In this document: positions 39,589 to 42,628 of the stretch, piece after piece
How the letters are laid out: each line of letters begins with the position of its first letter
Numbering within the stretch: the stretch's first letter is position 1
Sequence record: PV611058.1
Direction: 5' to 3' (one strand)
Length of the DNA: 64,000 nt
Made by a program: the position numbers and the translations under genes
Notes under the pieces: generated by a model
Databases searched by the model: none
The model's input: only the letters and a program-made list of their open reading frames with translations
Told to the model about the DNA's origin: nothing

Positions 39589-39609
39589 GGAGAGTCACAA
39601 TGACTCTCC
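39589..39609 (-). terminator. Rho-independent terminator
   Basis: GGAGAGTCA-CAA-TGACTCTCC. Confidence 0.7.
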
Positions 39610-39616
39610 ATATATT

Positions 39617-40057
39617 TTATTGTAAAACTTTGAGTTTGTAAAGCATTCCTTCACAAAAACTCATAATGTCTTCTAGTGTGTTAGTACTGCCATAGTCTTC
39701 AGCCTCTTCAAGCATAGCATGAATGGCTTTACATTGACTAACATATTCTTCAAGAATTGGTACACAATCCTCGATAGGGGTAAAACGATAACTGTTACCA
39801 GTACCTACCTGCAATGCACCGCGAGTGTTCATAATACCCTCTACAAATGCATCAACGTACTCAGGTAACTCTTTGTATAGTTCATCCAATTGTAGGTGCT
39901 TAGTGTAGAAATGGCTCTGTAAATGCCAGTTGTGAGCAGCAGCACTTAAAAATAAACTATTCTCAATAAATGTAAGTAGTACTTCATCATAAGAACTATC
40001 TTCTTCAGTATCTCCAATAAAGTCCATTACATGTCGCAAATCATTAATATTTTCCAT
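39617..40057 (-). CDS. Ferritin/Dps-like four-helix protein (DUF5856-type)
   Basis: AHNWHLQS..YTKHLQLDELYKEL..YVDAFVE; TAAATA upstream. Confidence 0.78.
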   Translation of the reverse strand: MENINDLRHVMDFIGDTEEDSSYDEVLLTFIENSLFLSAAAHNWHLQSHFYTKHLQLDELYKELPEYVDAFVEGIMNTRGALQVGTGNSYRFTPIEDCVPILEEYVSQCKAIHAMLEEAEDYGSTNTLEDIMSFCEGMLYKLKVLQ

Positions 40058-40087: not shown

Positions 40088-40516
40088 TTAGTTAATAATA
40101 AAGGTAACTTCAGGATTCATTTCTGAAACTGCATTTCTCTTACTTCTATTCCATAGTACTCTATTGTTATATAATGAAGAATCACAAATTATAAGTAAGC
40201 AATTCCTTAATCTACTTACAGTACTTTGATTACTTAAATCAGTTTCTGTAACAAAAAATACATTATCAGGAACTTCTACAGGAATTGATTTATCAAAGAA
40301 GAAAACTACAATAGGTCTGTTTGTATGAACTAAATTAATAAAGTCTAAAATACTGTTATAAAATTCAGTTCCTTTGTTTAAACTTAATGGATCTTTGATT
40401 CTCTTCAAATAGGTCTGAACCAAATTATGATCGCTTTTGATTTGATACTCAAAATATTCTTTGAATAACATTTGTGTTAATTCAGATGTATTGGATATTT
40501 TCGTTGTGTTACTCAT
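40088..40516 (-). CDS. Hypothetical protein (142 aa)
   Basis: ORF track. Confidence 0.55.
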   Translation of the reverse strand: MSNTTKISNTSELTQMLFKEYFEYQIKSDHNLVQTYLKRIKDPLSLNKGTEFYNSILDFINLVHTNRPIVVFFFDKSIPVEVPDNVFFVTETDLSNQSTVSRLRNCLLIICDSSLYNNRVLWNRSKRNAVSEMNPEVTFIIN

Positions 40517-40519
40517 TCA

Positions 40520-41170
40520 CTTCGTTCTCTCGTAACTCAAGAAGTCACTACGTTTACTTCGTAAACTAGTTCCTTCTGAAAATGATAATGTACTTTAAAA
40601 GCTTGACGGGATTTGTTGAGGACTATTTCATCCCCCCGCAGGGGAATGAAGGTAATAAAAAAGAGACAATTAAGTCTCTCTTGACGATGATGGCATCGGA
40701 TATTATCGAATTGCGAATTTCTCAAATTTTGGACGGATCTTTCCTGTACCAAAATTTAGAGAGCGAAAGCGGGTTGCTCGGTTTCTCTCTATCGCAGTCA
40801 TATGCAACGGTCGCTGGTCTTTTCATCAACAGCACTCAGTACTAAACTCTATTCGATCAAAGTAGTACCTGTTCTCAAATTTTGGACGCAACTTTCTTGT
40901 AAAATCGCGTCCACCATCCTTGAACTCCCTTAGCAAATTCGTAAGGTGCGAACCTTATACATCTATCTAGGAACTCTCTGTGTGCTTATTGGAGTTCTTT
41001 ATACAGCCGTGTCGCCGTGATTCGTGGTCTTATCTCGTGTTTGTTTGATTGCCAGTACTCTAACAGGTTTCTTTTGCTGTTCGCTACAACGGTAAAGCTC
41101 ATCTATCCTTTACATTTTCAAGAGAAGTAGGTTCTCATTATCCATTTTTCAATGTCCGTTGTCATTTTAC
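40520..41170 (-). ncRNA. Candidate structured non-coding RNA or structured DNA element
   Basis: No credible long ORF; many stems, including ones needing G-U pairs only on the - strand; 17-nt exact direct repeat (40719-40735, 40872-40888); extended -10 promoter upstream and terminator at 40656-40683. Confidence 0.45.
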
Positions 41171-41177
41171 AATATAC

Positions 41178-41206
41178 ATTATATCACTAGGATGTGTTAT
41201 GTCCCG
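41178..41206 (-). promoter_or_regulatory. Extended -10 promoter
   Basis: TGATATAAT on the - strand (TATAAT at 41178-41183); GGGACA 16 nt upstream. Confidence 0.55.
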
Positions 41207-41620
41207 TTACATGTATACCTTTTTCAAATCCTTGGAACAACGATCAAAAATTGTGTTGATGAATTCGACATCCTCTTTGATATTGGAGTCTATAGCATCA
41301 TTCTCGTTTCTTGTCGTGTTCCTGTATTTGTGATCAGGGTGATTGTATACCACCTTGACTACATTATTTAGGTCTACAAAAAATGACGATTTTTGCGTAT
41401 AGGAAGCCTGAAGCTTAATGAGTTTACCATCGTTTTGTAGATTAGTCTTGTGAATTAGTTCTTCAATACCATCTAAATGGCTATAGCTATCCTGTTCTTT
41501 TACGAATGTAACAGTTACCAGTACTGACTTCTCATCTCCAAAGTCAGAGATATTTTTAACAGCACTGATGATTTCTAAGTTTGAAAAATCTAATTCTTTT
41601 AGCATTACAAATATTTCCAC
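41207..41620 (-). CDS. Hypothetical protein
   Basis: ORF track. Confidence 0.55.
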   Translation of the reverse strand: MEIFVMLKELDFSNLEIISAVKNISDFGDEKSVLVTVTFVKEQDSYSHLDGIEELIHKTNLQNDGKLIKLQASYTQKSSFFVDLNNVVKVVYNHPDHKYRNTTRNENDAIDSNIKEDVEFINTIFDRCSKDLKKVYM

Positions 41621-42016: not shown

Positions 42017-42628
42017 TTAATTGTGATTATTCAATTTCTTTTGTTCTTTTTTTAGAGCTTTCATATGTCGTCCAAAATCACGAACATGCCATATATGGTC
42101 GGTTTCCCATAGTTCTGTACGTAAACGGCGTTCTTCCAATTCTTCTGGAGTAGGAATTTTAGATTTCTTCTTATCTTTATTGAAAAAATCATTCATATGC
42201 TCTTCCAGTAGATTTCTACCCTTAACTTTTTCCAGGAATTCATCTACTGATTCAGTTTTATTAGAACGAAGACTGTTACAACGTGAACACATGGTGTTGT
42301 AATTTGACTCTAAATCAGGTCCACCCTTAGATGCTAGTTGGTTATGATCTACTGTCATCAGTACTTCATATAGACCACAAACTGCATAGACATTTAAGTG
42401 AGGTTTACCATATACCGGATCAGTGCTATGTGAACGCTCAATGCGAACTTCAGTGGCTTCAATACCACACGCAACGCATTTACGATTCTTAACGAATGTA
42501 AGTACTTTTTGTGGGAAGTATCGGAAAGTAACACCGTTATATGTATAGCGTTTCATCTGAGTACTTCTTTGATTTAACTCATCAAGAAGTGATAGTTTGG
42601 CAACATAGTAGACCTGATATTTTGACAT
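42017..42628 (-). CDS. HNH endonuclease family protein
   Basis: CVACG, TVDH...KGG, MCSRCNSLRSN. Confidence 0.85.
   Translation of the reverse strand: MSKYQVYYVAKLSLLDELNQRSTQMKRYTYNGVTFRYFPQKVLTFVKNRKCVACGIEATEVRIERSHSTDPVYGKPHLNVYAVCGLYEVLMTVDHNQLASKGGPDLESNYNTMCSRCNSLRSNKTESVDEFLEKVKGRNLLEEHMNDFFNKDKKKSKIPTPEELEERRLRTELWETDHIWHVRDFGRHMKALKKEQKKLNNHN

Follow-up and report, generated by a model that had tools for sequence, protein, structure and literature searches.

The window analysed here, a stretch of 64,000 nt from sequence record PV611058.1, belongs to Escherichia phage WPEC3, a RaK2/121Q-like jumbo myovirus, and contains a 690-base gap (40517-41206) between two hypothetical genes read from the minus strand. 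The upstream neighbour (41207-41620) is a 137-aa ORF for which the WPEC3 record annotates a shorter CDS ending at window position 41605, and the downstream one (40088-40516) encodes 142 aa. No ORF longer than 87 aa was found in the gap, and the four tiny CDSs annotated there in the WPEC3 record are not conserved. Across 28 homologues the longest stop-free stretch changes strand and frame and substitutions show no 3-base periodicity, so that a protein-coding gene or pseudogene was rejected. A preliminary description of the sequence had proposed a promoter-to-terminator non-coding element with a duplicated module and alternative pairings, being either a structured RNA (switch, decoy or antitoxin-like) or a replication origin. 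All the sequence features on which it relied were confirmed at their positions. Its interpretation was only partly borne out: the structured minus-strand RNA with its own promoter and membership of a previously undescribed family are supported, but the limits of the unit, the alternative pairings and the antitoxin-like reading are not supported as proposed. Neither the multi-copy family nor the copies in bacterial islands could be seen from the single sequence.

On the minus strand the element starts with a sigma-70-type extended -10 promoter (41205-41178) consisting of a -35-like GGGACA (41205-41200), a 16-nt spacer ending in TG (41186-41185) and the -10 hexamer TATAAT (41183-41178), with 10 of 12 consensus matches. 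All 26 of the 28 aligned copies that reach this far carry a -10-type hexamer here, 24 of them with the full TG-n-TATAAT, one lacking the TG and one having a C in the hexamer; promoter activity was not measured and the start site, near 41171, is inferred. The alignment of these copies and its RNAalifold consensus define a predicted 5' domain (40921-41134) comprising a hairpin at 41130-41120/41110-41103, a helix at 41098-41094/41087-41083, a helix at 41080-41076/41007-41003 enclosing another at 41066-41060/41019-41015, two further hairpins at 40997-40991/40977-40971 and 40957-40953/40946-40942, and an invariant UAAGGGAG around 40931-40924; helices 1, 3, 4, 8 and 10 of the consensus show changes on both sides. 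It is followed by a first variable insert (40872-40921), which forms a local hairpin (GGACGCGAUUUU/AAAGUUGCGUCC), lies inside a covarying helix (40925-40922/40875-40872) and is present, absent or different among relatives. This insert contains one copy of the duplicated module (40872-40901), which is 90% identical over 30 nt to the second copy (40719-40748; E = 2e-5 within the window). The latter belongs to a second variable insert (40719-40758), a long hairpin CUCUAAAUUUUGG/CCAAAAUUUGAGA that is likewise optional among relatives. The duplicated module is an optional peripheral hairpin, many relatives carrying only one module or none. The alternative pairings proposed beforehand exist in this copy but are peculiar to it and do not covary: GAUGGUGG, which would close the domain with CCAUCAUC, lies in an insert unique to this copy, and neither the second GAGUUC partner nor the either/or pairing of CUCUAAAUUUUGG is conserved in the family.

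The 3' core domain (40679-40865) is built from a long-range helix at 40857-40851/40711-40705, a helix at 40796-40792/40716-40712, a nearly invariant GAGAG/CUUUC hairpin at 40789-40785/40769-40765 with an invariant loop, and a helix at 40763-40759/40723-40719. The first direct repeat (AUCAUCGUCAA in this copy, 40681-40691) precedes a U-tract hairpin (40656-40679; stem AGAGAC/GUCUCU at 40679-40674/40667-40662, U run at 40661-40656), taken in the preliminary description as the terminator of the unit. This hairpin is present here and in most phage copies and its stem covaries, but it is absent from copies C and D of WPEC3 (the four copies of the genome being designated A to D) and from some chromosomal-island copies, the island copies that have it lack the U run, and a terminator scan did not list it, observations that leave its identity as an intrinsic terminator undecided. 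Furthermore, conserved sequence continues past it, and the proposed unit is too short: the GC hairpin UUCAUUCCCC-UGCG-GGGGGAUGAA (40650-40627) is present in every copy, occurs in the genome only in the element copies and contains U-G pairs that fit the minus strand, and the conserved 3' tail (40603-40615), which like the GC hairpin belongs to the element in every copy, holds the second direct repeat (AUCCCGUCAA, 40612-40603), whose exact motif occurs only in the four element copies of the genome. Two small hairpins (GUUUAC-GAA-GUAAAC and GUGACU..AGUUAC, 40530-40566) just upstream of the next start codon are a diverged counterpart of a 3' hairpin domain that most other copies have (alignment columns 725-830), whose hairpin at columns 797-828 covaries in those copies. 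RNAalifold also predicted closing helices between the 3' tail and the invariant UGA, GGGA and UUUG segments; these are invariant or nearly so in the 28-copy set, and divergent members change the tail while GGGA stays the same, so we do not adopt them.

Conservation in relatives had been named in advance as a condition that the proposal had to satisfy, and it does. The core is 96-97% identical in PBECO4-like phages, whose surrounding 10 kb, like the flanking genes, is about 85% identical, and 65-71% identical in other genera, mostly in unannotated DNA; 122 columns are invariant among the 28 copies. A covariance model of the 3' core (R1) scores the window copy at 149 bits (E = 1.5e-28) and returns exactly four matches in the whole WPEC3 record, the four loci lying at record positions of about 72.7, 187.3, 270.9 and 322.2 kb. 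These paralogues are old (about 72% identical), co-oriented and located at orthologous sites across genera. The element is present in all the relatives of the phage, which have two to five copies by blastn. Searches that included two short degenerate patterns derived from conserved alignment columns identified 23 IMG/VR loci, 69 metagenome loci and 8 bacterial-assembly loci, one metagenome locus (L104) being a chance pattern match in coding DNA; 87 matches to R1 scored 73-166 bits. The bacterial homologues lie beside integrases and CI-like repressors in small islands of Serratia, Enterobacter, Buttiauxella and E. coli chromosomes. No island protein has a homologue in WPEC3, and the island proteins p286 and the LprI-like protein have no informative family.

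Covariation and folding energy had likewise been set out beforehand as tests of the structured RNA, and both came out in its favour. The 581-nt minus-strand RNA of the window folds at -154.4 kcal/mol against -130.3 +/- 7.1 for dinucleotide shuffles (z = -3.4), none of 100 shuffles being as good. RNAalifold finds 44 of 80 pairs with changes on both sides. On the 28 copies 94.5% of cells pair against 83.1% in shuffles, 55 of 121 pairs change on both sides against 37.7 +/- 2.5, and the covariation score is 0.311 against 0.117 for shuffles and 0.04-0.06 for slid controls. In the 3' core, on 75 distinct sequences, 97.3% of cells pair, 18 of 24 pairs change on both sides and the score is 0.636 against 0.261. 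RaK2 and XaC1, not used to build the model, add compensatory changes in the otherwise invariant GAGAG/CUUUC helix. Strand choice by whole-alignment folding energy (-158.7 against -155.6 kcal/mol) or by pooled counts on shared pairs (G-U 49 against A-C 44) was indecisive; it was settled by the promoter, by the U run after the hairpin and by G-U interchanging with A-U or G-C at several pairs, for example 45 G-U, 28 A-U and 2 G-C at one pair, which would be C-A mismatches on the other strand. A DNA-level repeat without RNA function, such as a mobile element remnant or a protein-binding or packaging site, could be suggested by the dispersed copies and by the integrases beside them in bacteria. However, nested helices with compensatory changes and arms up to 150 nt apart, together with G-U tolerated on one strand only, are RNA signatures, and the old paralogues at orthologous sites are not recent insertions; terminal inverted repeats and target duplications were not looked for, but we regard this reading as very improbable.

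The comparison with known RNA families, also suggested at the outset as a test, gave no match. Rfam 15, including GOLLD, ROOL, OLE, HEARO, raiA, group I/II introns, RNase P, tmRNA and 6S, has no hit in the window at gathering scores, nothing with E below 3 in 40300-41400 and no consistent weak hit in 12 phage loci or 8 bacterial loci, and ARAGORN found no tRNA or tmRNA gene in the window. We found no description of the element in the literature searched, and a catalogue of 10,006 candidate viral RNAs does not mention these phages in its text, its supplementary tables not having been examined (PMC10690425). The GOLLD and ROOL RNAs resemble it in length (about 550-800 nt), in their many helices and highly conserved junction nucleotides, in being carried by phages and integrated elements, and in having no adjacent dedicated protein and no known function; both self-assemble into multimers (bioRxiv 10.1101/2024.12.08.627333). 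However, there is no sequence or structure match to them in Rfam 15, the element described here resides in Enterobacterales and their T4-like jumbo myoviruses with four to five paralogues per genome, and its multimerisation is untested. The four RNA-seq-defined lncRNAs of the related jumbo phage PA5oct (PMC7318152), with annotated lengths of 236-619 nt, also lie in ORF-free stretches and are transcribed, two of them highly throughout infection, and their function is unknown; they were considered as homologues with expression data and rejected, since R1 run without filters gives nothing better than E = 0.27 on the three PA5oct stretches that hold all four loci. ToxI-type RNA antitoxins and their phage mimics share with the decoy idea of the preliminary description a phage-encoded RNA, but here there are no tandem repeats of a short unit and no adjacent toxin gene, the two modules being optional hairpins 153 nt apart and the neighbours unrelated hypothetical genes that differ between copies.

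Our preferred reading, to which we assign a probability of roughly 0.6, is that the gap is an independent gene for a large structured non-coding RNA of about 520-570 nt that acts in trans. We take as demonstrated by the comparative evidence that the gene is read from the minus strand and belongs to a new family, with a host-type promoter, so that it is probably made early by host RNA polymerase, with a 5' domain and a 3' core of local hairpins, long-range helices and many invariant unpaired nucleotides, that the RNA fold rather than a protein or a DNA site is what selection preserves, and that the phage keeps four diverged, co-oriented paralogues at conserved genome positions. Nonetheless, no transcript data exist for any member, and in this sense the promoter, both ends and the existence of the RNA itself are inferred. 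It is also by inference that some transcripts would stop at the U-tract hairpin (about 516 nt) while the functional form reads through to include the GC hairpin and tail (at least 569 nt), and that the RNA would act in trans as a stoichiometric folded particle, such as a scaffold, a decoy or a self-assembling RNA, on a target supplied by the host or by the RNA itself rather than by a neighbouring gene. The reason is that only the RNA is shared between the phage copies and those in bacterial integrase islands; copy B, moreover, lies antisense inside a plus-strand structural block. This trans action is argued only from context and the biochemical activity is not known. The position of the U-tract hairpin between conserved parts fits a plain one-piece RNA poorly, the direct repeats varying in parallel imply a partner that changes between clades, which argues against a purely host-side target, and the common orientation of all copies in every genome seen could reflect a DNA-level constraint.

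This common orientation, maintained even where neighbouring genes run the other way, and the four to five dispersed copies per roughly 350-kb genome would also be compatible with replication origins, an alternative that is not excluded but that we consider unlikely. In this view the promoter-driven structured transcript would form an R-loop or primer, as in ColE1 RNA II or the T4 oriF/oriG principle, and the islands would carry a copy so that the phage replisome amplifies them; islands sharing only this element with the phage would fit the borrowing of a cis-acting site. T4-like replication and recombination genes of gp41, UvsX, UvsW, RNase H and gp49 type are present, and the length of about 550 nt, the G-run/C-run hairpin and an AT-rich spacer after the tail recall primer RNAs, ColE1 RNA II being a structured transcript of similar length with G- and C-rich elements near its 3' part, although the whole genome is about 35% G+C. 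GC skew had been proposed as a test for an origin and lends it no support: GC and AT skew follow gene orientation, with no inflection at copies A, C or D, and the turn near copy B coincides with a change of gene strand. No iterons, no evidence of an RNase H site and no conserved antisense promoter of the RNA I type were seen, plus-strand promoters not having been specifically scanned for, and neither RNA-DNA hybrids nor origin firing were assayed. The ColE1 comparison is further weakened by the multiple copies and their presence in chromosomal islands. T4 oriF/oriG-type origins use a middle-mode promoter followed by a DNA-unwinding element, the promoter here being of the host early type; origin transcripts of this kind are not known to need an elaborate conserved fold, and 122 invariant columns with multi-helix junctions suggest more than an R-loop primer.

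The two 10-nt direct repeats vary in parallel across 64 sequences and are unexplained: in 59 of them the 6-mer is identical in both repeats, counting one clade offset by 2 nt, with five variants in all, and the pyrimidine position agrees in 62 of 64. Two segments competing for one partner would be expected to behave in this way, and the U-tract hairpin lies between them; it could be speculated that the RNA is a cis-acting leader controlling read-through into downstream genes by attenuation or processive antitermination, with this hairpin as the regulated terminator and the two repeats as alternative partners of one strand. In the window, and in GAP32 and CBB, the next gene is indeed co-oriented and starts right after the element, and repeat 1 can pair with an upstream GAUG-type 4-mer. 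However, this 4-bp partner is not maintained in many sequences, no consistent internal complement of the repeats was found, downstream genes differ between copies, copies C and D and some island copies have no U-tract hairpin, and copy B and its orthologues face the end of a convergent gene and have nothing to regulate, all of which makes this reading doubtful. Still less likely is a self-processing RNA, in which the core would be a ribozyme or the substrate of an RNA-processing enzyme and the repeats two equivalent cleavage or ligation sites releasing or circularising the roughly 80-nt hairpin segment between them. The size and the number of invariant unpaired positions are in the range of large ribozymes and the phage encodes RNA ligases and polynucleotide kinase, but this is purely an inference from a pattern, there is no similarity to any ribozyme family in Rfam, and no guide sequence complementary to the repeats was found.

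It is tempting to speculate, although we consider it improbable, on a new class of catalytic or self-assembling RNA that mobile elements trade among themselves, with jumbo phages keeping four to five specialised paralogues, small integrase islands having captured copies, apparently more than once, either to exploit or to interfere with an infecting jumbo phage, and the two repeats changing in lock-step marking equivalent sites where the RNA is cut, joined or bound. Such a finding would be of great interest. New RNAs of this size and structural complexity are rarely found, and earlier examples such as ribozymes, OLE, GOLLD and ROOL each opened a line of work; this one has unusually clean comparative support and sits in cultivable E. 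coli phages, so that its expression and structure are accessible to direct examination. Four conserved paralogues per genome, a host-type early promoter and homologues beside integrases in bacterial chromosomes point to a role in the traffic between phages, satellites or islands and hosts. The analysis also corrects database annotation, since several records call short spurious ORFs across the element.

The window corresponds, at 100% identity, to positions 230001-294000 of the record of Escherichia phage WPEC3 (PV611058.1), a 384-kb RaK2/121Q/PBECO4-like jumbo myovirus, and the element lies between two minus-strand hypothetical genes at 40088-40516 and 41207-41620. The features listed in the preliminary description were all found in the sequence where that description had placed them, so the observation on which it rested is sound. 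A promoter scan of the minus strand identified GGGACA, a 16-nt spacer and TATAAT with an upstream TG at 41205-41178, whereas the hairpin AGAGAC/GUCUCU with its U run, at 40679-40656, was not listed by a simple terminator scan. The 30-nt module occurs twice, at 40719-40748 and 40872-40901, the two copies being 90% identical (E = 2e-5 within the window). A folding energy no better than that of dinucleotide-shuffled controls had been proposed beforehand as evidence against a structured RNA; instead, the 581-nt minus-strand RNA folds 3.4 standard deviations better than such shuffles. Outside the element, an HNH endonuclease gene (42017-42628) is located about 800 nt upstream, here and in phage A4 but not near the other copies of WPEC3, and a perfect 9-bp hairpin with T runs on both strands, i.e. 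a bidirectional terminator-like site, is present at 39589-39609 after the gene at 39617-40057.

Lack of conservation in relatives would likewise have counted against the proposal, but the element is better conserved than its neighbours: in PBECO4-like phages it is 96-97% identical, while the surrounding 10 kb is about 85% identical. A core of roughly 40604-41135 is still 65-71% identical in phages of Cronobacter, Pectobacterium, Serratia, Erwinia, Yersinia, Salmonella, Klebsiella and Xanthomonas, where it is nearly always found in unannotated DNA. The element is also a multi-copy family, with two to five matching places per genome reported by blastn. Examination of the rest of the WPEC3 record revealed four copies, all on the same strand and about 72% identical to each other: A, the window copy; B, at record positions 187020-187637, between a small gene after the baseplate-hub gene and the gp49-type endonuclease gene; C, at 72440-72992, directly after the phage sigma-factor gene; and D, at 321880-322491. 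Each sits at a position that is conserved in other genera. B-type copies occur in Serratia phage BF, Salmonella phage SE_PL and Erwinia phage Hallingskeid, and the C-type copy of Klebsiella phage RaK2 also lies immediately downstream of its sigma-factor gene, so that this adjacency is conserved across genera (stretches L009, 22440-23048, and L038, 880-1640, of the sequences we examined). A covariance model of the 3' core, R1, finds exactly these four copies in the whole record and nothing else, and in every contig where two or more copies were seen all of them point the same way.

Across 28 non-redundant copies the longest stop-free stretch (median 79 codons) changes strand and frame, substitutions show no 3-base periodicity and indels are frequent, showing that the element is not coding. 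The WPEC3 record annotates four hypothetical proteins of 34-62 aa across the RNA gene (40537-41102), but several sister records annotate none or different ones, and these calls are probably spurious. By contrast, there is ample evidence for a structured RNA. Covariation in homologous regions had been named in the preliminary description as a test of its proposal, and it was found. A 28-sequence alignment from the -10 box to the 3' hairpins (A1) has 122 invariant columns, and RNAalifold predicts on it 80 pairs, 44 of them with changes on both sides. For a 121-pair structure 94.5% of cells pair, against 83.1% in shuffles; 55 pairs change on both sides, a count reached by 0 of 500 shuffles, against 37.7 +/- 2.5 in shuffles; and the covariation score is 0.311, against 0.117 for shuffles and 0.04-0.06 when partners are slid by one to three columns. 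Well-supported helices include long-range ones, such as 40857-40851 with 40711-40705 and 40796-40792 with 40716-40712. When 87 matches (75 distinct) were aligned to R1, 97.3% of cells paired, 18 of 24 pairs were compensatory, all seven pairs of the long-range helix covaried and the covariation score was 0.636, against 0.261 for shuffles; this alignment is fitted to the model and leans towards the structure, whereas A1 was made without one. RaK2 and XaC1, which were not used to build R1, score 118 and 97 bits and bring compensatory changes into the GAGAG/CUUUC helix, invariant in the 28-copy set.

Whole-alignment folding energies and pooled counts of G-U against A-C did not separate the strands, but three other lines of evidence do. 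First, a -10-type promoter element is conserved on the minus strand in all 26 copies that reach that far, 24 of them with the full TG-n-TATAAT, with a -35-like element upstream. Second, the U run follows the hairpin on that strand. Third, individual pairs alternate G-U with A-U or G-C, one of them with 45 G-U, 28 A-U and 2 G-C and another with 47 U-G and 26 U-A, while A-C combinations are almost absent; these pairs would be C-A mismatches on the other strand.

The comparative data modify the anatomy initially proposed, in which the element ran from its promoter to the U-tract hairpin taken as terminator. This hairpin is not the end of the element, since the GC hairpin (40650-40627) and the tail (40615-40603) are present in every copy, including those from bacteria, whereas the U-tract hairpin is missing from copies C and D and from some copies in bacterial islands, and has no U run in other island copies. 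In the WPEC3 genome the tail motif occurs exactly only in the four copies, and the GC hairpin motif, with one mismatch allowed, was found in three of them. The duplicated module is an optional hairpin that can sit at two peripheral positions, relatives having none, one or two. Three further proposals, namely the GAUGGUGG/CCAUCAUC closure, the second GAGUUC partner and the either/or pairing of CUCUAAAUUUUGG, concern sequence peculiar to copy A and do not covary. On the other hand, most other copies carry a further 3' hairpin domain with its own compensatory changes, which keeps an A-G mismatch inside an otherwise compensating stem (A1 columns 797-828, as in the aligned loci L002, L004 and L005); the window copy lacks this hairpin, the domain being represented there by the diverged hairpins at 40530-40566.

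Two 10-nt direct repeats flanking the U-tract and GC hairpins, at 40691-40681 and 40612-40603 (AUCAUCGUCAA and AUCCCGUCAA in this copy), show a regularity for which we have no explanation. In a 64-sequence non-redundant alignment they change together: the last six letters are identical in both repeats in 52 sequences, or 59 counting a clade whose alignment is offset by two bases, with five different versions, and a pyrimidine position is U in both repeats 36 times, C in both 26 times and discordant twice. Parallel rather than complementary change means that both repeats answer to one partner. However, a search for an internal complement found none that is consistent, and the 4-bp helix that repeat 1 can form with an upstream segment is not general. 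The RNAalifold suggestion that the tail closes the three domains rests on columns that do not covary in the 28-copy set, and it is contradicted by divergent members of the family.

The family extends beyond jumbo phages. A pattern scan of one genome per bacterial species returned eight loci, all true homologues at about 100 bits: a complete Serratia fonticola chromosome, Serratia sp., Enterobacter chinensis, Silvania, Buttiauxella, two Enterobacteriaceae assemblies and one small contig binned as Clostridium. These are full-length, with promoter, both domains, GC hairpin and tail. In most of them the RNA gene lies just downstream of an integrase, either a tyrosine recombinase or a large serine recombinase, the two types being interchangeable, and it usually converges on a CI/LexA-like S24 repressor gene followed by an unknown 286-aa protein and an LprI-like protein, although one variant has two ParB-like genes instead. 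The order integrase, RNA, repressor, 286-aa protein and LprI-like protein is shared by the islands in loci L040 (896-7992), L047, L042, L054 and L112; in L040 a resolvase and a match to the candidate defence protein PDC-S73 follow. Overall, 18 of 79 bacterial and metagenome loci have this island context. Only 2 of 5,426 complete E. coli genomes have a copy, which lies in a roughly 10-kb island beside ffs and is of the phage-like type, at 147 bits. Among 50,697 phage records only RaK2-like jumbo phages match. A divergent metagenomic clade sits in the same portal/baseplate-hub synteny as copy B, so it also belongs to jumbo-phage relatives. No island protein has a homologue in WPEC3.

The interpretation put forward initially, a structured RNA or else a replication origin, is supported in part: the non-coding RNA half is right, although its boundaries have to be redrawn. 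A match to known families was another check suggested at the outset, and the element matches no Rfam 15 family, is neither a tRNA nor a tmRNA, is not a ToxI-like array and is not related to the four RNA-seq-defined ncRNAs of the related phage PA5oct; nor did literature searches find a description of it. What the analysis demonstrates is an independently promoted, non-coding and strongly structure-constrained RNA gene family with four old paralogues per genome, i.e. a new, well-supported family of large RNAs with no known function, partner or activity. Beyond this we can only infer that host RNA polymerase transcribes the gene early, that the U-tract hairpin stops part of the transcripts, the functional form including the GC hairpin and tail, and that the RNA acts in trans as a folded particle. 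The latter is reasoned from its being the only component common to phage and island copies, from neighbours that differ between copies and from copy B having nothing downstream to regulate. The last of these points bears on a cis-acting read-through control, but neither this alternative, nor a structured-primer replication origin, nor a self-processing RNA is excluded by sequence alone.

Other features of the WPEC3 record emerged from the same examination. The terminase large subunit is annotated as two overlapping ORFs (record 162946-164169; stretch L011, 12946-14169), outside the window, followed by an 880-nt stretch with no annotated gene, in which Rfam finds nothing and model R1 has no match. 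The gene tables at the two ends of the record (stretches L008, 1-22500, and L014, 17700-40131) repeat the same series of small genes, which suggests, although sequence identity was not computed, a terminal repeat of about 22 kb included twice in the deposited sequence. Finally, a run of about 17 paralogous genes annotated as 'regulator of chromosome condensation' (RCC1/ATS1-like) occupies the plus strand of L008 at 27311-47580 and coincides with a strong positive GC skew.
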